DNA from: Podarcis melisellensis
Lineage: Eukaryota
Strand: one strand, 5' to 3'
DNA length: 64,000 bases
Assembly (NCBI GenBank): GCA_964234715.1
Contig: OZ174284.1
Part shown: piece after piece, positions 1 through 63,873 of the stretch
Position numbering within the stretch: the stretch's first letter is position 1
Layout: each line of letters begins with the position of its first letter
The notes under the pieces: generated by a model
What the model was told of the DNA's origin: nothing
What the model saw: only the letters and a program-made list of their open reading frames with translations
Databases searched by the model: none
Made by a program: the position numbers and the translations under genes

Positions 1-160
1 ACTGGTTGGCCTTCCATCCAGGACATCGGGCAGCTCTGCAAACTTTGTGGGTTCGAGGCTTCTTTAAATGCTGGCACATATTATCACCTAGTTTAATTTG
101 GAAGTTGTTAACGCAATATATGTCGCGATCCTTTACACCCTTCCCACAGGATACAGAGCA
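1..160 (-). CDS. ADAMTS20: ADAMTS20 exon 29 (TSR; cut by window edge)
   Basis: Acceptor ttttacag then CSVSCGKGVKDRDIYCVNNFQ...KKPRTHKVCRAARCPGWKANQ. Confidence 0.93.
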
Positions 161-1964
161 CTGTAAAAGAAAGAAGAATCACACGTTCTCAGCTGTTTGA
201 CTTTAGAATGACATTTTCATAGCAGAACCATGGCCAATTATTGGTACAAATATTGCATGGCAAAGAAATGCTACTATGTTGAATCAGGTCCATTTGGGCC
301 ACAATCATACACCCACTTAAGGGAGAGGGCCCTATTGAAGATATTGGCACTTACTCGTGAACAAACACTCATAGGGTTCTACTGTGTGGTCAGCCATGTG
401 AGTCTTGAAGTTCTCAAACAGGACATGTTGGCCAGTGATGCAGTTACACAATTTTGGAATCCAGACTTAATGGTCTTACAGAGAATCTCTCTGTGTTGCT
501 TTGCTTACTTTGAAGTCAGCCCCGCAGTGTTTGGTGGTCCCCCTACTCACTCTGCTAAGTGGGTCCTCCTCCGATTCTACTCTCAAGTCCTGCCCTGGCA
601 CCACCACTGATGTTGACAGTGGACCATGTCCTGCTCTTTGTTCCCATGGCCTAGCACCCAAACATTCCATTTTGCTTACATGCTTAATAGCATGTTGATG
701 TATCTATCCTCTGTGTGACCATCCATCTCTGTATGATTCTTTACTCTGATTCTCACCAGTCTTATAACGGTGAGAGGAAATCTTACTGGAAAGTCAGGTG
801 GAGTTAATACCAGAGCTGGTCAGTACCAGAGCACCCTACGAGGCCCTATCACTAACAATTCTCTTTCTGTTTTCTGTTGCCCTGATCTGCCCTGGGCTTG
901 GCAGACATTTAAATTTACCACATTGGCAGTGACACTACTACATGGTGGGCCATAATGGGAACTTAAAATAGCAGTTAGACCCAAATGCTCAGGGCAGCGA
1001 AAATAAGTCGGCAGTTGCCTGCTTATTTGTAGTTGTGTTTAAGATTTGCCTACTTCAGCAGCCTTACTTTCCCGAAAGCAAAAATTAATACAGTTCTTAT
1101 TTTCAGCAAATGGAAACATTTCTAAGGCTACTGACTGAGACTTGCATTTTACATCGCTGTATCTAGCAAGTTGTCTCATATTTCTAGGGAAGTTACATAT
1201 AGATTGTATGGTGGAACTTGCCTATAGTTTTACTGAAAAGTAGGATTTACTTCATTGTATATACAGCTAGGACTAGGGATGTCAGCGTATTTGTTTTCTT
1301 ATGCTAAATTTTCAACACTACAGGCTTTGTATTCTGTTACACTTTGAGGGTATTCTAATGAGGGGGAAAGACCCATGCGAAGGATATTTGATATTTCCTG
1401 CAAGGTATTCTTTTCTCTTATCCGAGCCCTTGAGCATGAGGCGACAGAGAACCTGCCACTTTTGCAAACCTTATCATTATAAAGGCATTTCAAAGAGCCA
1501 GTGCTGGAAGGATTAAGTATCAAAGGACCCCAGTGATAAGCTCCACATTAAAGTCTTTACACTGTAAACAGAACTTGATAAATGGTGGCACTTAAGTAAG
1601 GCAGGTGTTTGAAAAAGACACAACGTATTTCCTATTGTCTCAAAAGGCTCATCTTTTTTCTTTTTTTTAAAAAAAGTTCACTTATACTGTAAGGCAGATC
1701 TAATCATTTAATTTCTTTATCTGAAGTACCAACATGAAAACAGATCCAGTGTCAGTGTATTAGGCTGTCCCCTCCTTCCTCAGCGGTTTCCATTTCCGCA
1801 GTATGAGCTATTCCTCACCAGACACTTTACTTCCATTTTTCCTCTGTTTCCGAGGTCTGCGGTTTCCAAACAATATTCACCGAAGGCAACAGTGTTAAGG
1901 TAAGAATGTTGTTCTGTTCTTTACTTTCATAGCAAGGAAACATGCCTGGTCTATTCAGTGATTA

Positions 1965-2223
1965 CCGTATTTTTTGCTCTATAAGACTCACTTTTTCCCT
2001 TCTAAAAAGTAAGGGAAAATGTATGTACGTCTTATGGAGCGAATGCAGGCTGCGCAGCTATCACAGAAGCCAGAACAGCAAGAGGGATTGCTGCTTTCAC
2101 TGCGCAGCGATCCCTCTTGCTGTTCTGGCTTCTGAGATTCAGAATATTTTTTTTCTTGTTTTCCTCCTCCAAAAACTAGGTGTGTCTTGTGGTCTGGTGA
2201 GTCTTATAGAGCAAAAAATACGG
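1965..2223. mobile_element. Tc1/mariner (Tc2-like) MITE
   Basis: TIRs CCGTATTTTTTGCTCTATAAGAC / GTCTTATAGAGCAAAAAATACGG; TA target duplication. Confidence 0.85.
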
Positions 2224-3739
2224 TAATAATAAAAAATTAAGGGTGCAATCCAGCCACAGCTAAGCAAGTCCTTTTTTCAGCAGGAATTCACCAGAGTTCA
2301 GTTCCTGCACCTCTCAGGTGGGCACCATTGACATTATAAGAGAGCAAAGCAGGCGTTCATCGTGAGTTCCGGCATCTCTTTTTCCAGAAAAACAGCACTG
2401 CTTTAAAAGCACCATCAGTTTCAATGGAATAATTAAGCCAGTGCTGAACTCTCCCCATTTGAAATCTACAGGATTTGCATTAGAAGGATAATGCTTACAG
2501 TGCCAATATAAAAAAGCAGACGGCTGTTAATTAGTAATTCATACAGCGGCTTGTTATAAATGTATTGTTTGAAATGTAAAGATATAAATGCTTTAATTGT
2601 GACCTGCTGAATCCCTCAAATGTATAACGACAGCATGCAAATGCTCTGAAATAAAACCAATGCTGTCTTTGATCAAATGGGCACCAGTTTTGCTTGCAAG
2701 GAATATGGGGAATATTTTGCTGTTTACAAAAAGCTCATTTTAAGTTGTGCTTGTATAAAATAACACAAAACAGGACGCAGACAATCTATACTATAGAAGA
2801 TGGTGTTTGTGCAAGTGTGTTTTATGAAGTCACTGTAGTAGGTTTAGCTTCTTAAGAGGATTTCTTGATAATGGTCAATGAAGTGTCAATTAATGTACAA
2901 TAAAATAATGACAAAACAGACAGAGTATAGAGTGGAAGTTAGTAATTCAGAAAGGATAAAGGAAAAAACATTAGCTGTACACTAGTAATGGAAGGAAAGC
3001 AACAAGAAGTGCAGCAGCTGTGGAAAAAATATTAGGAGTGGGGAAAGTACCAAATGTATGGTTTTAAAAAAAGTCTTCCTTGGCCTAGTTTGATGATGTG
3101 ACACTGCTTATAAAAAGTTTCAAAACATACATGCAAGAGAGTATTGTACTCTACTGAATGGGCAAGCGGATTCATCTGCCTTAGATAAAGCAACTGGTCT
3201 ATTGCGACAGGCTGATGCCTGAAACATATTGGGAATTAAAATTATCTCTTTGTCTACTACACAGATGGTGCCAGAGGGCAGGATCCATCAAAGTTGTTCT
3301 GTCAGCCCAAGAACTCCAGAGCAGATTTGGGAGAGGCATGGGGTGTGAGGAGAGCAGAGGGAGGAAAGTTCTGTTGTGAAGACGGAAATCTTTGTGCCAG
3401 CGGATACATATAGAAAGAGCCCTTAAGTGTTAAGACACTTATTTGCTCTAGATGAAAAAGCTAAAGGCCAAAGACTCATACTCCAGTGTTGCTCTCTACT
3501 GAATTTTACTAAAATCTATGGGATTTGTTCCTTACACATAACTGTGCCCGACTGTGTCTCTCTATTATTAACTTTGCACTAGTGATGGGTGAGCCTCCTC
3601 TGCCTCGGTTCACTTCAGGTTGGCTTGGAAAGAAATTGAGTTATCTCCTCCCAAATTGGGTCCACTCCCAACCTCGTAGTCACTCAAACTTATCTTCCGC
3701 CGGTACCTCAAAATCCCCCCCCCCTTATCAGGTGGCAGT

Positions 3740-3784
<45 letters not shown>

Positions 3785-4047
3785 TTATTATTTATACCTC
3801 ACCCATTTGGCTGGGTTTCCCAGCCACTCTGGGCGGCTTCCAACAAAATATTAAAATACAATAGTCTATTAAACATTAAAAGTTTCCCTAAACAAGGCTG
3901 CCTTCAGATGTCTTCTAAAAGTCTGATCATTGTTTTTCTCTTTGACATCTGGTGGGAGGGTGTTCCACAGGGAGGGTGCCACTACCAAGAAGGTCCTCTG
4001 CCTGGTTCCCTGTAACTTGGCTTCTCGCAGCAAGGGAACTGCCAGAA
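3740..4047 (-). mobile_element. L2 LINE 3' end with (TTA)n tail
   Basis: ORF2 C-terminus RTFLVVAPSLWNTLP...FRRHLKAALF; (TAA)n at 3740-3783. Confidence 0.85.
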
Positions 4048-4584
4048 TGTACATTAAGCTGTAGGGAGACTGATGTAAGGGATGCCTTTCCTTCCTACTC
4101 CTCTTCTCTTGATACTTTTGTGTGATATGTAGCAGGGCACCAGACCAACCAAAAGGAGCCTTTGGGGATGTAGTCTGCATCTATTTGTAGCCGTGGCCTA
4201 GGGGCAGCACATTTTCCAGGGCCCACTTTGCCTGGGTTGGCATATTGCTACACCCCATGGAGATGGGAGGCCTCTCTCTGTCACCGTTCCCTGTAGCCTA
4301 GACACAGTGCAACTTGCTGCTACAGCCATACTGTGGTCTTCACTGTAGTCCAGTTAGTGGTGTGGGAGAGCAGGGTAGGGTAGAGGGGCCTGAGGGAATC
4401 AGCTGAATGGAGAGGGCTTGGGACACAATGAGTACAAGGAATTCTTCTCTAGCTCAGATCAAAATCTGAACTGAAGAAAAATTCAGGGATCATGTTTCGT
4501 GGTTGAGCTACTACTACCCCTTGAAACATGGATGCGTTCCTTCCAACATGTCTCCAATGAAAATAGGAGTGTCCTACCTATTCC

Positions 4585-4760
4585 ATCATCATCACCATCA
4601 TAATTTTATATATGCCCTGCCCACCTAGCTGGGTTGCCCCAGCCACTCTGGGCAGCTTCCAATATATAAAAACACAGCAAAACATTAAACATTTAGAAAC
4701 TTCCCTAAACAGGGCTGCCTTCAGATATCTTCTAAAGGTTGTATAGTTACATATCTCCTT
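4585..4760 (-). mobile_element. L2 3' tail fragment
   Basis: CCCAGCCACTCTGGGC...GGCTGCCTTCAGAT shared with the 3740 copy. Confidence 0.75.
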
Positions 4761-4782
4761 GGCTCAGGGGTGGCATAACTCC

Positions 4783-4963
4783 ATACCTTCCAATGTTTCT
4801 CTGACAAAAATAGGGTCATCCTACCATACCTTCCAACATTTCTCTGATGAAAATAGGGACGTCCTAAGGAAAAATGGGACATTCCAGGATCAAATCAGAA
4901 ACCGGGAAGGCTTCTGTAAATCTGGAACTGTTCCTGGAAAACAGGGACACTTGGAAGGGTCTG
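4783..4963. mobile_element. hAT-like MITE with duplicated left end
   Basis: CATACCTTCCAA repeated twice, right end TTGGAAGGGTCTG, internal GGGACA motifs. Confidence 0.6.
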
Positions 4964-6426
4964 TGGTGTGTCTCAGCTTGTGGGCACATAAATTTCATGA
5001 AGGAAGTCCCAAACTCTGAGATTTGCATCACTTTCTTCCTAAGTAAGAGGACACACTAGCATGTAGTATACTAAGAAAACTATCAGCTGAAAATTCATGT
5101 GATCAACAAGGTGTATTTTGCATTCAGCTATCCATATCTAAGTGGAGAAAAAAGCACTAGGCCAGCATTTAAAGGTTCAGTAAATAATCTCTTGTTACAA
5201 AGGTAGTTTCCTGTAAATTGCCCTAGACATTAATCTCTATAATAGATTAATAAATGCATTTTCCCCCTAGCCAAAGCACTTTAAACTCCCACAGGTTTCA
5301 ACAGGAGAGATTTATGCATGTGCTTAAATCTCCCACTGAAATTAATAGGACTTAAAAGTGCTTAACTTTGGCTGGATCGTGTGAATTTTATTGCAAAGTT
5401 AAAAGTTTTTTCACTGCTGCCACTTAATTCCATCTGTAAAACTAAACTGAGAAGTCTGTTCAGGTTTGTGTTCAAAAGCTTCTTTGCTTGCGCTTTAAAG
5501 GGTCGCTTTTCAGGAAACCGTACAGACAGGAACTCTTCATATAGCTTTTATATCTTTCCTTTCAAGAAACACCCCACATATGTGCCACCAAGGGGCCTCC
5601 ATCATTTGGACTGCAATTTAGATCAATCCTGCCTCTTCAGTAGTGGAAAACATTACCTTTTACAAAAAATACTGTGCGGCTATTTGGAAACAAATAAAAG
5701 CAGACTATTTTATAGCTACAAGAAAGGAGTAAGATTGCTTGAGATATCTGTTTCTAACTATGCATTTCTGCTTGTTTCAGGGCTTACAACAGCTGTGCAA
5801 GGAACTCCAGTGCCCAAGAAACAACTGGCCACATCTCTCTAGAAACAGTATATAGAGTGCATAATATCATATGTGTAGAAACATGGAGATACACCAAGTC
5901 AATTCTGCAGGTTCCAATCCATTGGATTGTGTCTAAGATCACAGGCCTAGGTTATCTAAATGGGTGGGTTGTGCAGACAGGCCTGGTTAACCATGACTTT
6001 AGGGTTTTTCACCTTTCTGATTTTCCCTATCTAAGTTATTGGTTGCTAAGGGGTGGTGGGTGGAAGGAGAGTGATGCAGTTTGGGGACAATTTAGGGCAA
6101 AACCGACCCTTCTCTGTAATAATGGGATTGTGTAGGCTATGCCAAAAGTCACTGCATACTTGTTTCCCCTTCCCTCGGGAGTCCTTGCAATATACGAACT
6201 CTTTCTCCACAAGCAAACTGTTCATCAAAATGATGGGTATTTAGCGAGCAATAATATAGCTGCCAGTTAGTGTCAATGGAGTAGAACGCTGTCCTTCCAA
6301 CTTAATAAACACAATAGAGTTATCACTGCTGACACTTGGAGGATTTAACAAGTTTCGTTTTGTGCTAGTTCAGTGCCTTTTCCAGGGAAGGTACCTGCTG
6401 TCTGACTCCTTTAAAAAATGATCGTA

Positions 6427-6933
6427 TGTCAGGGACCGTGCTGAGGAGGGCTGCACTGAGGAGGAATGGAGGGAGCCTCCCCCTCCCCCTGTTCCTGATC
6501 AGAATCCTGAATCTTCCCAGGACAGTATAGATTTGGAACAGTGGTTTGCAGAGGGGCATAGTTCAGAAGGCAGAAGCTGGGAAGTACTAGATGGGGAACA
6601 GCTAGGAGGAGGAGAACCGGGAGAGAGTTAACAGACTCACTGTCACTTGAAAGTGTTCATCTGCTCAGTCCAAGGTCAAGAAGAGCAGATAAGGTGGCAG
6701 CAGACAAAGCGCAGTGGTTGCAAGATCAGGTTACAAGATGCAGTAGTGACGGGGTGACTAGGGAGGAAGTGGGTGGAACCCTTAATTGGGAGCACCTTCA
6801 TTCCTAGGAATGGACTCTTTGCTCTCTCGCTGTGATCATTAAAGTTTCTAACTGGTAAGAGACTCTTTTATCTTTGTTCTGCTTATCTACTGCCAAAGGG
6901 GGAGGAAGGAAGCCAGTTCCCTGAAGCCTGACA
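6427..6933 (+). mobile_element. Solo LTR (about 507 bp)
   Basis: TGTCAGG...CCTGACA ends, 5-bp TSD TCGTA/TCCTA, ATTAAA near 6838. Confidence 0.75.
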
Positions 6934-8929
6934 TCCTATCACACCCATTGGCACTTTATTGCATAAGTAGTTTTTGGCAAAGTAATCAATTGCTTGCTGC
7001 ATCTCACACAGACAAAAGAAATAATTGGCTCTAGCCTTAAGGAAAGGCCCATTGATTCCAGTGGGTTTACTCTAAAAAGGATAATCCTAGCTAAAGCTCA
7101 GAAAAATAGTATAGTCCCTTATAGGCAGATGCACACACTTTCTACAAAAGTGCCCCCCACCGCTCTGTTTTTTCTAACCATTTTATTTCTCTTTGAACAT
7201 TTTTGCAATTATACTGTTAGAAGATATGCAGCACAATAATCACAATCATCTCTACATCACCACTCCAACATAAGTCTTATCATTGTCCATGGGACTTACT
7301 GCCAGGTACAAGATTTCAGTCTTAAATCTTATTCATTTGATGATTTATACAAAATACTTGCATTGGACGTAGCATACAGAAACCATTCGCCATAATTTGA
7401 AGAATCAAATATACCGACTAAATTGAAGCTGAATGATCTCTTATTTATGCTAAGATTCTATTACTTATCTCAACTGGACTAAACTAACATCTGTTGTATG
7501 GCAGATTCTTTTAAAAATATTAACACATCAAAGGGCAAAAGCTGGATTTGATTAGTATTGTTCAAAGTCTGTAGGCTTCTCTGGTAACTGGGCCTTTGTC
7601 TGCTAAATCCCCTTTTCCTTTAAATAATAACATTCAAGGGAGATCAATCAAATGCAGCCGCTGGAATACAAATGAATTCATATGATACAGGTGTAATATT
7701 CACATTCAGACACCTCAAGACACAGTTGATTGCAGAATCCTGAATAGTTGGGATGTTCTGCAATAAACTGTACTGGAAGAGATTGAGGTGACAAGGCCTG
7801 TGAAATTTCATGAAGCCATTCACCATTTGTATCCCCACCCTCCTTCCCCAGCTATAGTTCCTCTTCTTCCTTTTTGCACCATCTTTCTCCCCTCTTTCCT
7901 TTGCCTTATTGAGGAATTTTTACACTCAAGCTTGAGCTTTCAAGAGGCAAGAAAAACCTTCGGAAAAACCCCACACCCATCACAGTAGCCTTTCAGGTTT
8001 TCCTAGCCCCAATAATATTGTTGCTTCAGATCCATCTGCAGTGATTCTTCTTCACTGAATGATCCCAACCAGTTAGGGATTACACAGAGGGTCCCTCCCA
8101 ACTTAGCAATTCTATGATTCCATGACTGCAGTCTGACACAGCCAATGAGATTAGGCCACATCACTAACAGATAGTGAAACCACCCCTTCGAACAGTGGAG
8201 ATGCGCTTCTAATATTCTCGCCTTGCTGTGCTGTGCAGGAGGTTACATTGCCTATTTAGCCCTGCACAACCAGGCTTTGTCCCCAGTCCAACTCTAGTGG
8301 CACGTTGCTGTGTGTGGCTAAGTGTGGTGGAATGTGGATGAAATTAAATATTCGGATGGAAAAAAAGCAACGTGTTGTGAATTAGTGACATCAGCTTTTG
8401 GCTGTGCATCCAAAGACACATCTTCAGCCTCATTCGGCTGCAACTGTGTCGGATTGGATCAAGATGAGAAGTATCAAACCAGTTTCTCTGGCAACAACAG
8501 CACATTCCCCCCCTCCTTTTTAAAAATCATTTTTATTGATTTTCCAATAAAAAATATCCAATCATAATCCAATTAGAACAAAAAAACTAAAATAAAAAAG
8601 ACCAATTTATAATCCAAATTGTAATTATTGATTTTTGGGGGCTCCCCATAGTCTGGACCTCTGAAGCATATCTCCAAATCTCAGTCCTGCCTCTCCTTGT
8701 TGTTTTCATATTTTCCACATCCCAATTTAACCCTCTCTCCTCAAAACACCACCCTCTTGCAACCCTCCACAAAGAAGTGCTTAAATATTATATCAATCCA
8801 TCAATCAACTGTCTTCAGGCACAACAAAGCACTTCCATCTAATTATCAGGACAGTTATTGGGATATTAGGTGGAGGGGAGCCAATACCTCAAAGCTGAAT
8901 CTATGAAAAAACAAAGATGTTGTGTGCCA

Positions 8930-9500
8930 CAAGTTCTCATGCCTGGGAAGTGGGGAGACAGCTCATTCTGGATGGGGTTGCACTCCCTTGCAAGGCGCAG
9001 GTCCAGGGGTGACTCCTGAATTCAGCACTGTCACCAGAGGCTCAAGTGGCCTCAGTGGCTAGGAGTGCTTTCCCCCCTACTCTCACTGGTTTGCCAAGCT
9101 CTGGCCCCTTTTGGAGAGAAATGACTTGGACACTGTACTCCATGCTCTGGACACCACCAGATTGGACTACTGCAATGCGCTCTACATGCAACTGGCTTTG
9201 AAGATGACTCAGAAATGTCAACTGCTCAAAAGTGCCGTGGCCAGATAAGAGGTTGCATTTAGATCTCTGTTTCAAAACAGAGACACATCTGAAAATGTCA
9301 CTTAATGGCTTTCAGCAAACGCTGAAGTCTCAGCTCTTTACCGTGACCTTTGATACCTGAGATACATATTTTTAAGACCTTATTTTGAGATTGTAACTTT
9401 TTTAAAAAACTGTTTTTAATGTTGTATTTGAAATTGTTGCAACCTACCCTGGGACTTCTGAGTGAAGGGAGGGTAAAATATAGCAGCAGCAACAACAACA
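8930..9500 (+). mobile_element. Degraded L2 ORF2/3' fragment
   Basis: RLDYCNALY motif (agattggactactgcaatgcgctctac), typical of L2 ORF2. Confidence 0.65.
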
Positions 9501-10425
9501 ATTTCAGAATCATGATTCTGACTTGGTGTGCTAAATTCAAATGGACTGCAGGACCAATAATTTGCCACCAAGCAAGGAACACACCCATATTTTAAACCTG
9601 AAAATAACTCATCTGTCTGCATCACTGATCATGATGCAGCAATCATTGATAGATTTGCACCTTTGTGCTTAAAAAATTAGCTCTGTAAAGAATAGAGTTG
9701 AATGTGAATTCAATTCAATTCAGTAGAATGTATTCTCAACTATTTATGAAGCATAGATTTTTTGGTAATTGCTGAATATTATAACAATTTGATTATTGTG
9801 GGATATTAAGAGAAAATCTTTATTGTATTGCTAATTGTTTATACCAGGAATAACAATGACTTTAGTATAGATTGTCTTCAGCTCTTAAATTGCCTGATTG
9901 TTTATATAGATATTTTTGTATGTATAGGATGCTTATAAATAAATACATTGATTTGAAAATGAACATCAGATTTCAAACTATAAAGATAATTCAATAGTAT
10001 ATTGTGCAGGAGTATTTCAGGAGGTCACTAGGCCATTATGTTTGACATCTCTATTGCAACTGAAATCTCTATAATAAAATCGTGTTGGTCTACTCTTCTC
10101 AGCTATGTCCCCCCCCCCCCCAGGATTAAACTACATATTGGAAAAAATATAATGCTTCTAAGATTCAATTATTATTGAACAATATGTAAGTGTGTCACTA
10201 TATAAACTGATTTTCACACTGCATAAAAGTTTAAAATTACTTATTCAATACTTACTATCAATACACACTTTCCCCCAACTGCACAGATATATCATCATTT
10301 CATGCAGTATAATATGCTTTTTAAAAATAATAAAAAAGACATACACACAAACTTGTTACAACAGAAGGAACTATTATTTTTGCTTTTGTCTTAACAGGGG
10401 TCTTTGCCGTGGCATCTGATTACCA

Positions 10426-10553
10426 NNNNNNNNNNNNNNNNNNNNNNNNNNNNNNNNNNNNNNNNNNNNNNNNNNNNNNNNNNNNNNNNNNNNNNNNNNN
10501 NNNNNNNNNNNNNNNNNNNNNNNNNNNNNNNNNNNNNNNNNNNNNNNNNNNNN
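10426..10553. other. Assembly gap (128 N)
   Basis: Run of n. Confidence 1.
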
Positions 10554-10763
10554 ATGTGGTGGGATCAGCTGTCAATAAATTTCCTCCCTACTTCACAATT
10601 TGAAGGCCAGTCATTATTTCAAGTACAGATGCCATTACAATATTATCACCAGCTGGTAAAATGGCAAAGTTTTAAAACCGCTTGATATATCAATCATATG
10701 GTTACTGTATGCATAATCACAAATGTCTTCCCATATAAACTATACACAAGTGTGTATTGTAAG

Positions 10764-11130
10764 AAAGGTAAAAAGGAGTCCTGGACAGTTAAGTCCAGTC
10801 AAAGGCGGCTATGGGGTTGTGGCGCTCATCTCGCTTTCAGGCCGAAGGAGCCAGCGTTTGTCCACAGACAGCTTTCCGGGTAACATTGCCAGTATGACTG
10901 AACCGCTTCTGGTGCAACGGAATACCATGATGGAAACCAGAGCGCATGGAAACGCCACCACAGTGGTACCTATTTATCTACTTGCACCGACCTGCTTTCA
11001 AACTGCTAGGTTGGCAGGAGCTGGGAAAGAGCAATGGGAGCTCACCCCGTCACAGGGATTTGAACCGCCAACCTTCTGATCAGCAAGCCCAAGAGGCTCA
11101 GTGGTTTAGACCACAGTGCCACCTGCATCC
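10764..11130 (-). mobile_element. Sauria SINE
   Basis: Reverse complement of the 46653 copy; tRNA-like head and TTTACCTTT tail. Confidence 0.9.
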
Positions 11131-12200
11131 TATCTATGCATTATATTGCTGTTCAGATATAATCCTTTACTGGATATACCCTTTGCCAGTATACTGAAGT
11201 GCACCTTATGAAGTAATGATTATAATAATTGGGTATCTATTGAGGCTAAACCAAAACAATGACTTTGCAGCTCTGCAAAAACGAGGATCCCTTTCCAACA
11301 TCCTTCTGGAAGGCTCAAAAAGGGGCAAAGTGTTTTTAGCATGGCTGCATAGATGTACTCCTATTTCCCTTTAGGTTTCATTCTGCATTACCTGTCAGCT
11401 GGATGGTGTAGAGTTGGATGGTCTGGTGTTCATCTATTTCTGCAGCGCTATTTCTCTTTAAACTAGTTATTTTCCCATAGAAGCAAGTGAGTTCCTGCAT
11501 AACCAGATTTGGTCACATGAGATTATCACTGAGAACCAACAAGCTAATTCGGAGTAATGTTCAGGAAGCATTGCCTTCACTCTGAACTGATTTCATTTGG
11601 TTTCAGTGATGTTGCTATGTAGCAACACCTGACGGACATGTGATGATGCCATTATTACTAACAAGATACCTAAGCTACTTCTCTTTTAGAAAGAAAAAAG
11701 TTCAACAGCTGATGAGGCTATGTAGGCACACTAAACTAGCATGAGAGAATGAGATTTTCAGGGAACATCTTGAACCACCCTAAAACACCATCCAAAATGT
11801 TTAGCTGGAACTATCAATCCCTCCACCCACCTGCTTCAGAAATGAGGAATGCATGCATTTATCACAAGATGAAAGTCACATTAGGGAAAGAACACTGACA
11901 AAGATGATGGCTGGAATGATTCTGTCAACAGCAACAAAAGAATTCACACACAAAGATGAAAGTACGAATAATTTGCTAAAAGATCACAGAAGAACCAAAG
12001 AATATTTCAGCATGTTCCTCTTCAAATGTAAGAAAACTATTATGCCAACAATATTGAGACAGATGTACTTTTACAATGTACCTGCAACTGTTGGGCATGC
12101 ACAGGAGCGAACGCAGGGACCCATTTGCTGTGTGTTGGGTCTAGGTTAAGCATGGTGAATGGCAGAGGGATCTGCTGTGTAAATCAAGAACATTTCAGCA

Positions 12201-12460
12201 TGGATTGACAATATGGACAGACTAGTTACATACGAACGAATTGCATATTGACGCAAATTAAGAATGGATAAATATGAAGAAATCTGGAAGGAATACTTAA
12301 GCGATAAGGCGGGAAGTGGTGGGAAGTAGGGAGGGAGAGGTGGGGAAATATTGTTAAAAGGGTGTAGTTATAGGTATATCAGTACTCAAATCTGAATTGT
12401 TAAATTGTATTATTAGTGTTATTGTGGTATTGAAAAAACGATTAAATAATTTTTTTAAAA
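12201..12460 (+). mobile_element. 5'-truncated L1/Tx1-like retroposon end
   Basis: Perfect 15-bp TSD AAGAACATTTCAGCA (12186-12200, 12461-12475); residual ORF WIDNMDRLVTYERIAY*RKLRMDKYEEIWKEYL; ATTAAA near the 3' end. Confidence 0.8.
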
Positions 12461-14555
12461 AAGAACATTTCAGCAGGGACAGCATTAGAATCATGAATCA
12501 TGAATAGGACTGATGACATTAGTAAATTACATCATATTATTTAATATATCTTTAGGAGCTTATTAAGAGAATTGATGATATTCTCTAACCACATTATATT
12601 ACTTAATGTAATTACATATATTTGATGATAACAATGAAACGTTAATATTGAAGCAAAAAATATCAATAAAATGGTCGAAGAGGATATGTTTGAATCACCA
12701 CTTGCTTGACAAGAGTCCTGCTAGAGAACAAATAGCTGTGTGTGGCAGAAAAAGTAGGTTTCATTGAATTTCCATGCGGAACTGCTGCAACTTTTACAGG
12801 AGCAGATTGGAACACGTACAGTTTGATTGACTGATTCATGTGTTTCAGGAACAACAAAAACAAAATAGATTGAGACATTCTGTTTTCACTGAGGAATACC
12901 CAATTAAGGCAGATGAAATTTAGGATTTAAGAACATAAAAATAGCCCTGCCTGATCTCAGGAAAGGCACATTTTTGCAAAACCGCAAGCGAGACAGGAGG
13001 GGGAAAGCCTACCCCTGCTGCTTCCTCCCAGAAATTGGTATTCAAAATCATTCTTCCTCTGAACATGCAAGTAGCCACTGATAGACATATTCCCCATGAA
13101 TCTGTTCAACTCCTCTGGTTCCATGTCATTTATGTACATAAGAGTACCATACACACAGTTTAGGGGTCACAAATGCCTACTGTGGGTATAGTGATAGTTC
13201 TGCATAGTATAGTGATTGTTCTGCATGAACAGAAGTACTTTCCAAACTAAGGCAGCTCATATTTGCAGCCGTTGAACGATCTAGCAAAATGTACTTTAAA
13301 AATTGTTGTAGGGAAAACGGCTCAACAACTTATTATAGCTAAGCAACTTAAAAGCAGCTCATTTTGTACATACCTCTTCAGGTTAGCTCTTCGTTCTTCC
13401 CCAAACAGGGTAAAATATGGTTTGGGATGCTGCAAAAGAATGAGCTACAACTCAAACCATGTCGTTTCACAGATCCCCCAATGCCTGTATTATGAACTTG
13501 GTGGAAACAACCTCAGGATCCAGGAAGAACTGCAGGCACCAAGCAAAACTGAAGAAGCAGAGCTCACTCCATCAGCTCTGCTGCGACAGGCCAGCTCCAT
13601 CAGGCCTCCTCTCCCTTCAGCTGTCCTCTGGGCGAAGCCATTTCATCAGGCTGCCTCAGTGGGAAAGATAGGAAGCAGGGTACATTGCATCCACTTTTCT
13701 GGAGCCCCAGCTCCACCAGGGACCTCCTGCCTCTCAACTGTGCCTGAGTTTCAAGTTTTATTTTCCTCTATCCTCCTTGTTCCTTTTCCTTTGTGTGTTG
13801 TATTTTAAATTATTTATTTGAATGTAAGCCTGCAGGTAGGGAGTGTCTTGCTTTGATTTCATGTAACCTGCTCTGGAAGCCTTTTTTGGCTGCTCTAAAT
13901 AAATAAATGTGCTCTAAATAAATAAATAGATGTACACACACACCCATCTCTACAAAACAGAGTTCACGTGTAACAATAAGCAGCTAGGACTGCTGGCTTA
14001 TGGTGGATTGTTGTGCATAAGAAACTTCCTAGTTTATCACTCCTGCTTCATTCCTTCCCAGGAATGAGTAGAGAAACAAAGTAAGACATGGTTGTGCTCA
14101 ACCTCCCATTACATCCAAACCTAAGATCAAAGCATGTTGCACTCCAACAAGCCAGGTTTGGAAGCCAGGAACAAACCACGGTTTAAGGCTGGCTAGCAAT
14201 CATGGCTTGCACAACCCTGGGTTTGGTTATAACAAGAAGCCAAGTTTGGTTCTCCCAATTGTGTCAGAGGAGTAACGAAGCTGGAGTAAGCAAATAGTGT
14301 GTCTGCACACAATAAACCATGTTACACCAGCAACCCTAGTTACTTGTGACATAAGAATGTGGCCAAAGTACACCACAATTAGTGTGCATATTTAATCCGT
14401 ATTAGCTGTTAATATAGTTACTTCAGTGCCAAAGGCAGAAAAATACCACCTTTCCCCTTCCCTTGTGGTCAATGACAATTGCATATTAATTTGATAACAA
14501 TTTGTATTTTTTCTCTTTCGTAACACCCAAAACCTACTACTTGAGATGTCTAAAT

Positions 14556-14926
14556 GGTAAAGGACCCCTGGACATTTAAGTCCAGTCAAAGGCGACTATG
14601 GGGTGCGACGCTCATCTTGCTTCAGGCCAAGGGAGCTGGCGTTTGTCCACAGACAGCTTTCTGGGTCATGTGGCCAGCATGACTTAACTGCTTCTGGCAC
14701 AACGGAACACCGTGACGGAAGCCAGAGCGCACAGAAACGCCGTTTACCTTCCCGCCACAGTGGTACCTGTTTATCTACTTGCGCTGATGTACTTTCAAAC
14801 TACTAGGTTGGCAGGAGCTGGGACAGAGCAACGGGAGCTCACTCCATTGCGAGGATTCACACCGCCAACCTTCCGATCAGCAAGCCCCAGAGGCTCAGTG
14901 GTTTAGACCACAGTGCGACCTGCGTC
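14556..14926 (-). mobile_element. Sauria SINE
   Basis: Closely similar to the 10764 copy. Confidence 0.9.
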
Positions 14927-16274
14927 TACTGTACTCCACCTAATGGTAGAACCAGCCCTGATTGAAATGACACAGTCATACTGAAATAGTATTTGTTCTA
15001 GATCACATTGGTTAAAGGATTCAAACTGCCATGAAACTTTAGTAGTTATGGAATGATTTCCTCCTACCTGAGGTATTTTTCTTTCTGACACAGAAAGGAA
15101 TGTACCTAGATTCCACCAAGCGCTAAGTGTCTTTCTGGTTCAGAATATATTTTTGATAATAGATAATATAAGTCCACACATAAAGGCCATGACAAACTCT
15201 ACAATATTTCAATCTTTAATTATTTAAGGGTGTTGTAACAATTATTCCCCTATGAAAGCATTAGCACTGAAGAACAGCACATTTATTGTCATATAAAACA
15301 CTTCCACATCAATGGTTAATTCCAAACAGCAATCCAAAAACAAAGGATGAATTAATAAAAGCACATTTAATTATTAACAATTATGAAGCCACGAAAGACA
15401 AATGACACAACAATTAAATCAAAAAGCAATTATTTTGCATAGACACCAAGTAGTATCCATATAATTAAATTAAATTATCAGACATAAATTATTATTTATT
15501 ATTTTATTCTGTTAACTACAAGGTAATAGAACATTAACATGGACATTTTTAAACAATAACAACAACAACAATACAATCAACACATTAAACTTGTTTGAGA
15601 ATTTTAGAAATGTCTATTTTGTTCTCCTTTTTCAACACAATTATGCGCTGGATGGAGTGTCAAGTGTTTAGAGTCTTTTGATTTCATTGTATGAATTATG
15701 TCAGACACTGGCAGATCATTCTTTTCTCCCAAAGCATTAAATAAAATCAGCAATCAGCGTATAGTAAGACTGAAGTTAGTAAACAAATCATTGGACAAAT
15801 ATCAGTAATGAGGTATTCTGACGCTTGACAATATTCAGCAGCAGAGGAAGAAGTACGTAGTTGGTTTTGAAAGCAAGATCCTGACTTCCCTTTTAATATA
15901 AAAGACTATTAAAAATATAAATACTTTCAGGCACTATAATAAGTGAGTGGAGGCACTTTTATGACAGAAAATTCCATCTTTACATTAACACGGGTCAAAT
16001 AAATATTCTTTTACTTATATATACTTCATCTGACTCCAAGGACTACTGAAGCCAAGAACAGATGGTGGCCCCTGACGTAATGGTGAAAGGGGTTGAAATA
16101 TATAAACACAGAAGAGGATTGATAATATCTACTGCTTCTTGATCTACAAAATAAAAGGAAGCTAAAAACTGCACAGTAAATCTTATTTGTACATAATTTC
16201 AATAAACAGAATTAGTTACATCCTGAGCAAGTTAGTTGCACTTGGACCCCACTGACAACAAGGAGAAATATCAC

Positions 16275-16523
16275 GAGGAGAAGGAGTTTGGATTTGATAT
16301 CCCGCTTTATCACTACCCAAAGGAGTCTCAGAGTGGCTAACATTCTCCTTTCCCTTCCTCCCCCACAACAAACACTCTGTGAGGTGAGTGAGGCTGAGAG
16401 ACTTCACAGAAGTGTGACTAGCCCAAGGTCACCCAGCAGCTGCATGTGGAGGAGCGGGGAAGCGAACCCGGTTCACCAGATTACGAGACTACCGCTCTTA
16501 ACCACTACACCACACTGGCTCTC
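16275..16523 (-). mobile_element. tRNA-derived CORE-type SINE (Squam3-like)
   Basis: Minus-strand head GCCAGTGTGGTGTAGTGGTTAAGAGC with B-box-like GGTTCGCTTCC; core-like GTGACCTTGGGCTAGTCAC; TCC-rich tail. Confidence 0.8.
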
Positions 16524-18739
16524 AGCAATCATGACTAACTTCCCACTGATTTTAATGGAGCCCAAATGCAATGAACTTGCTCTGGATCCAGCCCAATGTA
16601 CTGCTGAATTAATGCATTTAGGATAAAAATGTCAGTTCACTTATAAAGCCTTATGAGAGAGAACAGAAACCCATCTAGGAGTAAATACAGAAGTTCACAG
16701 CTTCACCAAGTTGGTTGGTTACTTCCATTCACATGAGAGGGTATTGGAGCTACAAATGAAGACAAAAGTAGCTTCACATATTCTAATAAACTTAGAGCCT
16801 AAATAATTTTCTATTGCATTTACTTTTAACTGAGTAAAACTATTATTCTTTCCAGTACTGGCGGCTTTGCCATGTCTTGATCTTATTTTCATTTATGTTC
16901 TAGAATCCATGCCTCGCTAATTGGGTTACTGGCATATTCATGCATTAGTTCCAACATCATTAGTTTTTACCATTTCAGAGAGTCATTAAGGAAAATAAAT
17001 ATTACGAGGTATGACCCAGACACATCTTTAGCACCACTGAATTCAAATGGAGAGAATTCAGCCAGAGTTTAATTTTACAATTTTACAATTGTAATGAGTG
17101 CAATTTAAGCATGGAAATGCTTTGCAAAATATTCTGGTGCTGAATGTTCAGTATGCTTTAGATTGAAAGTTCTATTTGCAGCATGAAAAGGTTTTAAGAA
17201 TTACTTAAATATTTTTGGGCATATAAAATATTTCTTTATAAAATTGACTTCGAAACAGCGGAAGAAAAATAACTGCAAATGGATATTATAGTATTAACCT
17301 GATAGATATTGACATAGTTAAAGAGAATGCTGAACAATTTTGCTTGCAAAATTGTTGTTAATAAAACCAGAGGCTTCTAATAAATGCAGTGAGTTTTCCA
17401 GCACGATCTGCTTAGCTAGACTAATCAGTGTTGTTCTGTTATCCAGTAACTCCCACTATCCAATTCTACTCCCAAAATAATAGTATTGTGATTATGCTAA
17501 GAACATGACTCAAGCATCTTTAACTACAACCTACTTAGGGCTCATCCATGCTTACCTTAGCTCCGCACAGGTCTGAACTTTCCAAGTCTGAGTGTCTGAG
17601 CGCTTTTGTTTCTTGCCCCAGCACTTTCTCCATGAAAACCTGCTCTTTACCATTGAATCGGAGCAAATGGCAATCTGCAGAAAACCTGAAGTGCTGTTTG
17701 CTCCAATTCAGTGGTAAAGATTGGGTTTTCCTGAGGGAAAATAGCACTTGGGCACACACTGGGAAAGTGCAAACCTGTGTGGTAAGCATGGATAAGCCCA
17801 TTAACTGCTTAACTTTGGCTGGATAATTCACATTTTTTGGGAGGGGAATGGCACTTGTGAAAGCATCAATGGCAATAGCTATGTATGTTTTTGGTACAAC
17901 CAAGGTGTGATCTTGTTCAAACACAACAATAAAACATGCCTTGTTGCTCTCCCCTTTGTGTGTGAAGGGAGGAGACTTAAATCTCATTGGTTTGTTCTAA
18001 ACCATTTTTTCCCCATTTCATCTGAACTCAGGCAACTGCAGTCTGTACAAACCAGGAATAGATACTTTAAATATCCTTACTCACACACAAATAAGACGGG
18101 GGGGGGGAGGCGGGGACACAATCCCTAGACATGTGCAGACTAATGCTTATAACTTCAAATCAAAATCTATCTGAACCATAAAATGAAGGCTGTTGTATTT
18201 TATACACAATGCAGTATTATACATATTTCTGTAGCCAACAAATATGAGTCTTTATCACACACTGTATGGATGGCATGGTATACATTACTGAATATAAGGC
18301 AAGCCAGCTATATACACAACAAAGAGTGTTCATTATTTTCTATGTACAAAAATAAATATGTAGAAAACATTATAGACTTTTACGCTGACTTTTAAACAAG
18401 TCCCCCTTTTCGTTGTCTTCAAAACCAGTTAGTAACAAAAAGCTTAGTCACTCTTGATGATCAGAAACCTACATGTTTGTTCCCACACCCTAGAGTGTAC
18501 AAAGCATCAACTTGACTTCTATTAGAGTCACTGAAATTGCCACCATTGACTAGCCACTTCCAAGGCTTGTAGCAATGCAGCAGTTACAGGGGTTTACACC
18601 AAGTAGCAAACTACATATACAAAATGCATGCTGAATGCACTGTTCTTCTTGTATTTAAACAAAACTTCTACTTAATAAACAAAAAGGCAAAGGGGAAAGG
18701 AAGAAAGTAAAATAAACATGATAGTGAATACTACCGTAC

Positions 18740-18916
18740 CGATTTCCATGGTCCACGATGCCATGAAACTTCAACAGGACACGCATGTATGTTGCACTGT
18801 GCTCTTTCAGGTGGTTTCTCTAACAGTTCACAGTTTTGATCATTCAGCACTTGACCATTTGCAAGCTGACAGATCACCAGTCGTGTCTTTATTCCATCGC
18901 CACATGTCTGAGTACA
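18740..18916 (-). CDS. ADAMTS20: ADAMTS20 exon 28 (TSR)
   Basis: CTQTCGDGIKTRLVICQ...CNIHACPVEVSWHRGPWKS, 177 nt; donor G|GTACGG. Confidence 0.95.
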
Positions 18917-19785
18917 CTGGAAGTTAAATACAGATCAGCATTTTCATGAATGGCACTGTTATCAAGAAGAGCCTGTAGTTTATTGCTAATAATTTTAATT
19001 ATCAAAGACATCTGTATTCCTTATTCCAATCAGCTGTGTGTGGCATTCATTGGGCTTATCCTTTCCATATGAGGAAAACAAAACTGGTGTAGCCATTTCT
19101 TTTACATAAATGTGTATACTGCCTGGTTATCTAGAACTGGTGTTTTTTTTGTAAGGAAAATAGCTATATTAGCGTTGTTCTTACGTGGTTAGGCTGATAC
19201 AAGGTGATTGATCCAAGGTCACTTCATGGGTGAGTGGAAATGTAAACCCTGGTTCCCCAGGTCCTAGCCCAACAGTCTAAGAACAACTACTATGAGTATT
19301 ACCATAGAATGCTTTTTCAAAAAAGAACTAGCTAAAAGAGGAAGCCTATATGGGTCTAATGGGTTTACTCCCAGCAAGTGTAGTGAGTTGCAGCCTGTTT
19401 TATATACCTGTAGAAAAGGCGTACAATAAAGAAGACATAGATATTTGAGAAGCATGACACAAAATGACAGGTGAAAACAGAAGAAGATAAGGGGGGGGTG
19501 GATTATTGGAAATGAGATGGAATATCCACTGTTAAAAATACAACAGACAGCAGTGAAATTAACGTTTCTTTACTATGCTAAAACATCTGCAAGTCAGCCT
19601 CATTCTCATTCCCTACTTGTGAACCAGGGCTGGGTTTGTCTAGAAAATGGACTAAATTGGTAACAAATGTTATATTGCTGGGTTCATAATGCTGCGTGGA
19701 ATTTGTCTAACATCAAATAGTAAGTTAGAAAGCATTAATAGAAATAAATACTCTTTTTTAACCAAATGGAGTCTAATCATCTTAC

Positions 19786-19947
19786 TTCTCCCCAGTCCCC
19801 ATAGTTCCATCTTGGACAGGGACCAGAATCGCAATGGCTGGAGTCAGGTGGTTTCAGTGCTTCATCACAGAAGCTAGCACTTCTTCCTTCCTCATCTTGG
19901 CACACCACGACCCGGCGGTGAAATCCACCAGCACAAGTACTTGAGCA
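19786..19947 (-). CDS. ADAMTS20: ADAMTS20 exon 27 (TSR)
   Basis: [21 protein letters not shown]...[13 protein letters not shown], 162 nt. Confidence 0.95.
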
Positions 19948-20635: not shown

Positions 20636-20990
20636 TCACCTTTAAAGCCCTAAAAGGCCTCGGCCCAGTATAGCTGAAAGAGTGTCTCCACCCCCATCGT
20701 TCAGCCTGGACACTGAGGTCCAGCTCCGAGGGCCTTCTTGCGGTTCCCTCACGGTAAGAAGTGGGGTTACAGGGAACCAGGCAGAGGGCCTTCTCGGTAG
20801 TGGTGCCTGCCCTGTGGAACACCCTCCCATCAGATGTCAAGGAAATAAACAACTATCTGACTTTTAGAAGATATATGAAGGCAGCTCTGTTTGATATTTT
20901 ATCACCTTTTTTCTGTTGGGAGCTGCCCAGAGTGGCTGGGGAAACCCAGCCAGATGGGTGGGGTAATCATCATCATCATCATCATCATCA
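20636..20990 (+). mobile_element. L2 LINE 3' end with (CAT)n tail
   Basis: RAFSVVVPALWNTLP...FRRYMKAALF; same family as 3740. Confidence 0.85.
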
Positions 20991-61842: not shown

Positions 61843-62489
61843 GTGCAGACAGCAATAAGCTAAGTCGGCCCAATTCTCTGACTCAATCTTTCGGTCGTCA
61901 TGGTTTGAAAAAGATGTAGAAACTAACAATGGTGCAATACATGCATCATCAATATACAAAGGGCAAAAACAATGGCTTTTGCTTCACTCATACCTGACCT
62001 TCCTAACAATACAATACAGGCTATATTCTGGCTACGCTCCTACGCACCATTTTAAAACTTCAATACTGATGATGTTAAGTCACCAGATGAATAAAACCAG
62101 TCCAAAATCTCAGGGCTCTTTCTAGCATTCATTGGGTGCAAATTGATTAAAATTTGCTCAGAGTACACATACTAAAAATTAACGAGCCTAAGTTAATCAT
62201 GCTAATTCAGTGGGCTGACCCCCGAGTAAAATTTAGCTGAGTTAACACTGAAAGTCTGGCATATTCCAAAACACATCCTATGATACAAAACTGAGAAAAT
62301 GTTATTTCCTCAGGAGCTTATGAATTAATCCCGACGTCCATGCAAGAATAACAGAAGGCCAGCGAAAACAGGCACTGCTCCTCTTTGACACTGAATAACT
62401 AACTCCAAACACAACCCAGGACAAATGTCTTTCTTATGGGTGCCTGAAATGTTATTTGCTCTGGCCTATCTGCCACAGTGTAACCATGT

Positions 62490-63500
62490 ACGAGGACGGG
62501 GAGAAAAAGGCCTTCCAGCAGGCGGGAATGCACCTGAAAGAGACCAGCGCCCAGTCCCAGCCGCCAACCCCGGGCTCTGCCTTCGCGTCGGCGCGCGCCG
62601 CGCGCCCTTCCCGCACGTGCGAGGCTCCTTGCGCACGCGCGCTGGCCTCACGCCGCCGTCCCTCCTCCTCCTCCGCCAGCGCAGCGCCAAAGCCTCGGGT
62701 TCCTAGAAAGCGGCTGCTGGCGGAGAGGGGCGTGAGGCGAGTGGCCGGGGCTTTTGGCGCGGGTGCCCGAGCCCGGGCGGGCGGGCGGGCGCGCTCTTGG
62801 AACCGGCCGGCTCTTTTACCTTGCTTGGGGTGCAGGCGGGCTTCCCACGTCCTGGCGGCGAGCAGGGCGGCGAGGTACAGCAGCCGCGCCAACCCCTCCG
62901 GACCCCGCATGGTTCCGCCTGCCTCAAACGCCTCGGGCGCCGCTCCTTGCTGCCTCAGCGGCGGCCGCGGCAGCTACTGCAGCCGCTCGCCGGCTGGGCC
63001 GACCTCGGACGGCGCGGCTCCCTCATGTTCCCGCGGCGCCCGCGCTGCGCCCGCCGCCGACGCGTCTCCTCTTCCTCCTCCTCCGCCGCCTCTTCCTCTC
63101 CGCCCCGGCGTCCCCGCTCGCCTGGGACTTCTTCGCGAAAGGCGACGCTGCCGGCTCGGCGCGCCCTGCTGCTGCCGCTGCCGCCGCCTCCCCTCCACGT
63201 TCGCTCCCTCCAGAGCTGCTGCTGCCGCCGCCGCCTCGCTCTTTCCTGCCGCGCAAGGAGGGAAGGGTGCCAGCTTCGCGGACTCTCCGGCCACCCCGGG
63301 ACCCCCGACATCAAAGACTCTGCCCGCCCCCTTGGGGCAGGGACCTGACCAGCGATTGGAGGAGTCGCGGCGGCGGCGGCGCTACCGACTCGCTCGCGCT
63401 GGCTCGCTCTCGCACACGGAGCGGGCTGGAGGTTGCGCGGCTGGCTTGCCAGAGGCCGGTGGCGGAAAGGAACCGGCCCTGTAAGCAAGGCGTGCGGTTC
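62490..63500 (-). promoter_or_regulatory. CpG-island promoter and 5'UTR of ADAMTS20
   Basis: Abrupt GC/CpG-rich tract around exon 1; CCAAT (ATTGG 63355-63359), GC box 63323-63330, TCF/LEF-type ACATCAAAG 63308-63316. TSS cannot be located. Confidence 0.85.
62820..62910 (-). CDS. ADAMTS20: ADAMTS20 exon 1 (signal peptide MRGPEGLARLLYLAALLAARTWEARLHPKQ)
   Basis: ATG in context GGAACCATG; hydrophobic stretch; 91 nt; donor G|GTAAAA; phase fits exon 2. Confidence 0.9.
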
Positions 63501-63611
63501 TTGATTCCTGCATATAGGTAGCCTCGGGACAATAGAAAAGGAACCGGTGCAAAAATCCACCTTAAAAGTTCTGGGAAAGAAAGCACGAGAAATCGAATCC
63601 CAGTTGGGTTC

Positions 63612-63873
63612 TAGGGTTGCCAGATTTCGAAAAGTAAAAAAACCAGGACACCCCGAAAGTTCGTAGGAAGACCCCAAACTGCTGAACGCTTTTTTAAAAG
63701 GAAACCACCTAAATCATTGAGCTTTTTAAAAGGGAAAGACGTGGAAAAAACCCCATGATTTTTCGATTGACTTTCCTGAACTCCAGGACAAAGCACCACT
63801 TTTGGGAAGTTCCCCCCCAAATGTCAATTCCGCCTTTGAAATCCCAGTAGTGTCCAGACGTATGGCAGTCCTA
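63612..63873. mobile_element. hAT (Tip100-like) MITE upstream of the promoter
   Basis: TAGGGTTGCCA...TGGCAGTCCTA inverted ends; related ends at 47115, 47516-47688 and about 60765. Confidence 0.7.

Follow-up and report, generated by a model that had tools for sequence, protein, structure and literature searches.

The window, by which we mean the whole stretch of 64,000 nucleotides of Podarcis melisellensis DNA analysed here, carries the gene ADAMTS20 on its minus strand (Table 1). Pfam matches on the translations of its exons correspond to the propeptide, cysteine-rich and TSR domains of ADAMTS. The exons are colinear with ADAMTS20 of Podarcis muralis at 95-100% identity per exon, and the window is colinear as well with residues 1-1471 of the gecko protein. 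Taken together, the Pfam matches and the colinearity with these two proteins reveal the module order of ADAMTS9/20, from propeptide, reprolysin-type protease, cysteine-rich and spacer modules to a long run of TSRs, by which an ADAMTS20 orthologue is recognized. The gene is nearer to ADAMTS20 than to ADAMTS9 since exons 27 and 28 match bird partial proteins named 'ATS20 metalloproteinase' at 91-100% (the start of exon 28, plus 91% for exon 27), whereas the ADAMTS9-type exon 28 peptides of fish are only about 50% identical to that of the window. The number 28 is itself approximate and comes from an exon count against gecko and P. muralis ADAMTS20.

The surroundings of exon 1, from 62400 to 63700, are promoter-like and GC-rich (58%). 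At the opposite end of the gene, exon 29 is preceded by a good acceptor (...ttttacag, 170-161), and it is from the start of this exon that the length of intron 28 follows. The exons encoding the GON domain would fall past position 1 of the window; in the long form of P. muralis, residues 1429-1912 yield the corresponding match (PF08685, E=1e-89). Intron 28 contains a run of 128 N (10426-10553), which is either an assembly gap or a masked stretch. In intron 26, a GAT-type triplet repeat at about 20900-20960 on the minus strand would be read as eight Asp in the read-through frame of exon 26.

Table 1. Features of the ADAMTS20 locus in the window, in the order of transcription
Feature	Position	Strand	Remarks
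Exon 1, coding part (signal peptide)	62821..62910	-	ADAMTS20 start, CpG-rich promoter region
Exon 27 (control)	19786..19947	-	donor GTAAGA TGA (19777-19785), reads V-R-stop
Exon 28	18740..18916	-	59 codons, phase 0 at both ends, acceptor ttccag
Donor and read-through codons GTA CGG TAG	18731..18739	-	Val-Arg-stop
Intron 28	161..18739	-	18.6 kb
Conserved non-coding block	15132..16034	-	+2706 to +3608 after the donor, single-copy, AT-rich, 29% GC
ATTAAA	15892..15897	-	+2842; shared by lacertid, Phrynosoma and rodent; poly(A) signal candidate
ATTAAA	15366..15371	-	common to two lizards
ATTAAA	15215..15220	-	common to two lizards; block conservation stops ~90-130 nt downstream
Exon 29	2..160	-	first exon missing from the short form; cut by the window edge

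Exon 28 encodes one ADAMTS-type TSR followed by the W..W start of the next one (PF19030, E=1.9e-13). Its peptide, CTQTCGDG...SWHRGPWKS, aligns to residues 1370-1428 of P. muralis ADAMTS20 and closes on the codon TCG (18742-18740). Beyond this codon, the donor GTACGG occupies positions 18739-18734, with its GT at 18739-18738 and a non-consensus C at +4 (18736), and an in-frame TAG lies at 18733-18731. The initial annotation had read this junction as TCG followed by GTA CGG TAG, so that a transcript left unspliced at this point would end in ...GPWKS-V-R-stop, and a direct reading of the minus strand confirms it. The predicted product of 1430 residues is also that of the initial annotation: exon 28 being colinear with P. 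muralis residues 1370-1428, the addition of Val-Arg gives 1428 + 2, a length that borrows the P. muralis numbering.

The donor had further been described as non-consensus and as retaining CpG dinucleotides that would normally decay, and the first of these descriptions needs to be qualified. With five matches to the nine consensus positions and a C at +4, the donor is indeed weak and ranks among the weakest of ADAMTS20, but it is not a unique outlier, since the donors of exons 23, 25 and 27 are predicted to be as weak or weaker; we have thus discarded the notion of a uniquely weak site. Two CpGs are found at the junction, one at the exon end (tCG/G) and one at +4/+5 (aCGg). The latter is present in all the lineages read with the exception of plaice, while the former is less protected. 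Exon 28 closes on S (TCG) or P (CCG) in the majority of species and on L or W in a gecko, a skate, a sturgeon, a jerboa and a mole-rat, and from these residues we infer that its final codon has G as third base throughout.

A short form of the same kind is known in the mouse. Isoform 2 of mouse ADAMTS20 (NP_001158257.1, 'isoform 2 precursor', 1425 aa), a curated RefSeq entry that is also isoform 2 in UniProt, was found here in a 90% cluster around a murid ADAMTS20. It ends in ...SWYRGPWKS-VR and splits from the long form of 1906 residues after residue 1423, past which the long form reads CSASCG. The comparison of these two C-termini bears out the statement, made in the initial annotation, of a mouse short form ending in VR at this same boundary. 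A cDNA for the short isoform of Adamts20 was put together from the mRNA of E17.5 mouse embryos (Silver et al. 2008, PMC2265537), and the short mouse protein was employed to digest versican in an assay, where it was active (PMC2265537). Secretion and proteolytic activity of the short product are reported for the mouse form (PMC2265537). The mouse and lizard forms share the ...GPWKS boundary, the added Val-Arg, the immediate stop and the loss of the last TSRs and of GON; they differ in that a cDNA and an activity assay stand behind the former, whereas the latter is predicted from sequence. A rodent contig (L004) carries the same donor core, GTACGA TAG, with CGA in place of the lizard CGG as the Arg codon. 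The 'short' ADAMTS20 models of rat are unrelated variants and were rejected as equivalents of the VR-ending form. Mouse isoform 3 (517 aa, curated) leaves the long form after residue 500 and has a tail of 17 residues.

The donors of other species were read from ORF-called fragments and from gene models of other assemblies, the bird contigs being placed by 94-98% identity to named bird proteins and the rodent contig by 88% identity to murids. After an exon ending in TCG, the intron starts with GTACGG TAG in the Podarcis window (a lacertid), GTACGA TAA in Phrynosoma and GTACGA TAG in two birds and a rodent. After an exon ending in CCG, it starts with GTACGA TAG in a percomorph fish, GTATGA TAG in plaice and GTACGG TAG in another teleost lineage, whose nearest match is Scleropages (73%). 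In these eight ADAMTS20 lineages compared at the DNA level, every substitution within the nine bases of the donor keeps the early stop. Four kinds of change have occurred at the site: two are synonymous in the Arg codon, one replaces a stop by another and one is a CpG transition creating an earlier stop. The last of these belongs to plaice (L009:4282-4293), where the +4/+5 CpG decayed by C to T and moved the stop one codon upstream, the old TAG still standing behind it; the plaice assembly annotates exon 28 as a separate protein of 70 residues.

At the protein level, gene models end in VR at this boundary in Phrynosoma, gecko, the frog Dendrobates tinctorius (RefSeq) and the halosaur Aldrovandia, and that of sole ends in V; a number of these proteins with a VR ending are predictions of automatic annotation, and amphibians and cartilaginous fishes enter the comparison at the protein level at most. 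The donor alignment proposed with the initial annotation therefore finds V-R-stop in the DNA of lacertid, Phrynosoma, two birds and rodent and, by gene model, in frog and gecko. That annotation dated the switch between long and short forms to the amniote ancestor; its conservation in amniotes is borne out and its age exceeded, since the early stop is also present in three teleosts, the frog and the halosaur, and a similar one occurs in ADAMTS9. The switch would thus predate the amniote ancestor.

Two further gene models leave exon 28 by other routes. The Ensembl model of the sparrowhawk Accipiter nisus follows exon 28 with a tail of 42 residues and omits the first ~140 nt of intron 28, including the stop. 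The tail is coded in the bird contigs (L001:7327-7452 and L002:7398-7502) at about +141 to +266 into the intron. It may reflect genuine alternative splicing or an artefact of the model, and either way suggests transcription into intron 28 in one bird. The Ensembl model of the tuatara Sphenodon punctatus has, after ...GPWKS, a tail of 12 residues in place of VR (GFNVGAAELRIF), which has no match in the lizard window.

On this evidence we consider, with a probability of roughly 0.7, that the lizard junction is orthologous to the terminator of mouse short ADAMTS20 and that it would act as a switch opposing a weak donor to intronic polyadenylation. Exon 28 ends in phase 0 at the weak donor TCG/GTACGG, and a transcript keeping intron 28 would add Val-Arg and stop. 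The initial annotation attributed the short form to a failure to splice; this has to be corrected, as a stable short mRNA would in addition need a poly(A) site within intron 28. Most likely, splicing at the weak donor would compete with cleavage and polyadenylation inside the intron, giving rise to a composite terminal exon. The locus does combine a sub-optimal donor with a long intron, as such an exon calls for. We infer that the lizard would make use of this switch; support from transcripts comes from the mouse (curated RefSeq, PMC2265537) and from an RNA contig of fish ADAMTS9. The product would be a secreted protease of 1430 residues comprising the catalytic module, the spacer and 10 TSRs but lacking the last TSRs and GON, and candidate signals for its 3' end would be those of an ATTAAA-bearing conserved block 2.8-3.5 kb downstream.

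Within 1.66 kb of the lizard stop, neither AATAAA nor ATTAAA is found, the first of these hexamers standing at +1666. Further into the intron lies the conserved block (Table 1), which is 71.5% identical to Phrynosoma over 945 columns and is essentially the one extended stretch that aligns across 10 kb of intron 28. It lacks a long open frame and is single-copy in the loci compared, for which reason it was rejected as a repeat; it was also rejected as the source of the alternative tails of tuatara and rat, neither of which matches it. A profile built from the two lizards alone recovers ~180 nt of the block from the rodent intron 28 (same strand, E=1.2e-7), and this match takes in the ATTAAA at 15897. 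The candidate poly(A) block is ~1.7-1.8 kb from the stop in rodent as compared with ~2.8 kb in the lizard. Sequence and profile comparison did not find the block in fish introns. It would suit a composite terminal exon as its distal 3' UTR and poly(A) region and is a candidate for that role, although it could be an unrelated conserved element; the role is only a candidate one because the first 1.66 kb hold no hexamer and the fish introns compared gave no counterpart.

The paralogue ADAMTS9 displays a comparable design. At the homologous donor, a genomic contig of fish ADAMTS9 reads TCG, GTACGC, TCA, TGA, and two annotated forms of Synchiropus ADAMTS9, of 1437 and 1462 residues, end in ...PWSS-VRS (models such as KAM8868525.1). 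Further ADAMTS9-type fragments end in VRP; their cluster was found on many metagenome contigs and may be human host DNA. A search with an alignment of 38 exon 28 sequences brought new matches to ADAMTS9-type fragments only. A spliced RNA contig of fish ADAMTS9 (L011, Logan SRR32360494, 2352 nt) joins at least eight exons in frame, then reads TTG, GTACGC, TCA, TAA and continues for at least 950 nt into an intron homologous to intron 28. The short forms of ADAMTS9 resemble that of ADAMTS20 in the homologous exon end, the unusual GTACG donor, the early in-frame stop and the predicted absence of the distal TSRs and GON. They differ in belonging to a paralogue, in their V-R-S or V-R-P tail with the stop one codon later and in the bases +7 to +12. 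A GTACG donor with an early stop common to both paralogues suggests an origin before the ADAMTS9/ADAMTS20 duplication, a proposal that draws on vertebrate sampling.

The same RNA contig lends itself to another explanation, in which intron 28 would be retained or detained so as to adjust how much full-length ADAMTS20 is made, the RNA remaining nuclear or being degraded and the stop serving only to avert a long aberrant tail. L011 contains a single ATTAAA 849 nt past the stop, shows no poly(A) tail in the ~100 nt that follow this hexamer, and may therefore come from a retained-intron RNA. The weak donor, the large intron and the lack of a canonical poly(A) signal near the lizard stop would agree with this possibility too. 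However, any intronic stop would suffice for decay, and the introns of this gene reach one within 2-55 codons anyway, so that the persistence of the stop at codon 2-4 throughout the sampled range is left unexplained. Moreover, the mRNA of mouse isoform 2 is curated and was cloned from embryonic material, and an ATTAAA-bearing block is conserved downstream in amniotes. We regard a detained intron as an improbable account of the site, albeit the least improbable of the alternatives to a switch.

A slightly less probable alternative, likewise doubtful, holds that the nine bases are kept for the sake of splicing, as a donor with an adjacent intronic element, and that the stop is incidental and the short transcripts noise. 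Any donor is under constraint from +1 to +6 and a phase-0 intron always yields Val (GTN) as the first read-through codon; the GTACG core, common even to ADAMTS9, fits a constraint at the level of splicing. The other donors of the gene provide the control. In the lizard, the read-through tails at the nine phase-0 donors of exons 20-28 measure 3, 5, 3, 6, 31, 23, 55, 2 and 2 codons. Besides that of exon 28, four of these donors thus have a stop within 3-6 codons, and V-R-stop is likewise the reading at exon 27. Since several ADAMTS20 donors have an early stop, such a stop is ordinary in a single genome, and with exon 27 as an example we have rejected V-R-stop as a special feature within one genome; the chance occurrence at exon 27 in lizards speaks to that extent for a by-product of splicing.

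Comparison between lineages gives a different answer. The V-R-stop of exon 27 is found only in two lizards, birds running 14-16 codons and fish 17 before a stop, and looks like a coincidence at the level of a lineage. When lizards, birds and fish are compared, none of the eight other donors (exons 20-27) keeps either its stop or the bases at +7 to +9, so that conservation of +7 to +9 sets exon 28 apart from every other ADAMTS20 donor; it is this conservation across lineages that lifts the exon 28 stop above chance. Teleosts and tetrapods separated more than 400 million years ago, so that unconstrained intron positions +7 to +9 should by now be random; by our estimate, ~5-6% of random triplets are stops. 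Past +6, changes preserve the stop and not the bases, Phrynosoma having TAA for TAG and ADAMTS9 either TCA TGA or TCA TAA, and the C to T of plaice makes an earlier stop. A by-product of splicing also has to contend with a real mouse short cDNA whose product was active on versican (PMC2265537). Lastly, an inherited relic, working in mammals and unused in this lizard, could be argued from the different lizard Arg codon (CGG) and from the distance between the stop and the first canonical poly(A) hexamer, but is very improbable, as an unused stop is unlikely to outlast the separation of lacertid, iguanian, gecko and bird, the TAG of Phrynosoma changed to TAA, again a stop, and a 900-nt intron block is conserved between two lizards.

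Returning to the switch between a weak donor and intronic polyadenylation, what it would separate can be read from the domain content of the two forms. The short form holds the protease, disintegrin-like, cysteine-rich and spacer modules with 10 TSRs, and the 484 residues that it misses carry the remaining TSRs together with GON. The two forms would differ in function, extracellular proteolysis being kept in the short one and a GON-dependent role lost. A role in ER-to-Golgi transport that does not depend on the protease has been assigned to the GON domain of GON-1 and ADAMTS9 (PMC3338439). In a broader version of this reading, which we advance tentatively and to which we give somewhat less than even odds, the GTACG donor with its in-frame stop would be a regulated switch predating the ADAMTS9/ADAMTS20 split and kept in both genes across jawed vertebrates. 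It would part matrix proteolysis from a GON-dependent intracellular role, in the secretory pathway or at the cilium, and the conserved intronic poly(A) block would provide its 3' end in amniotes.

Composite terminal exons formed by intronic polyadenylation are familiar from soluble VEGFR1 (sFLT1) and from secreted versus membrane IgM, whose C-terminally truncated forms have a changed localisation or changed partners. The proposed ADAMTS20 switch resembles these systems in setting a donor against a poly(A) site in a large intron and in truncating the C-terminus by means of a few intron-coded residues and a stop. It differs from them in that both ADAMTS20 forms would be secreted, in that the loss concerns a C-terminal module and not a membrane anchor, and in that the poly(A) site of ADAMTS20 is a candidate.

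ADAMTS9 and ADAMTS20 take part in the survival of pigment cells, the closure of the palate, the separation of digits and the formation of cilia. To our knowledge, reviews barely mention the short mouse ADAMTS20. A review of ADAMTS regulation published in 2021 reports alternative splicing in seven family members, among which ADAMTS20 is not included (PMC8275829). The literature searched yielded no paper on the conservation of the short ADAMTS20 terminator or on the design shared with ADAMTS9. Already known are the isoform curated in the mouse and a few automatic annotations; the breadth of conservation appears to be new as far as that literature goes. A read-through terminator has been held from teleosts to mammals through changes that preserve the stop, and is mirrored in ADAMTS9, which argues that the GON-less form has been selected and is not a cloning curiosity. 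The C at +4 of the donor, the stop and the conserved ATTAAA block offer targets for isoform-specific experiments.
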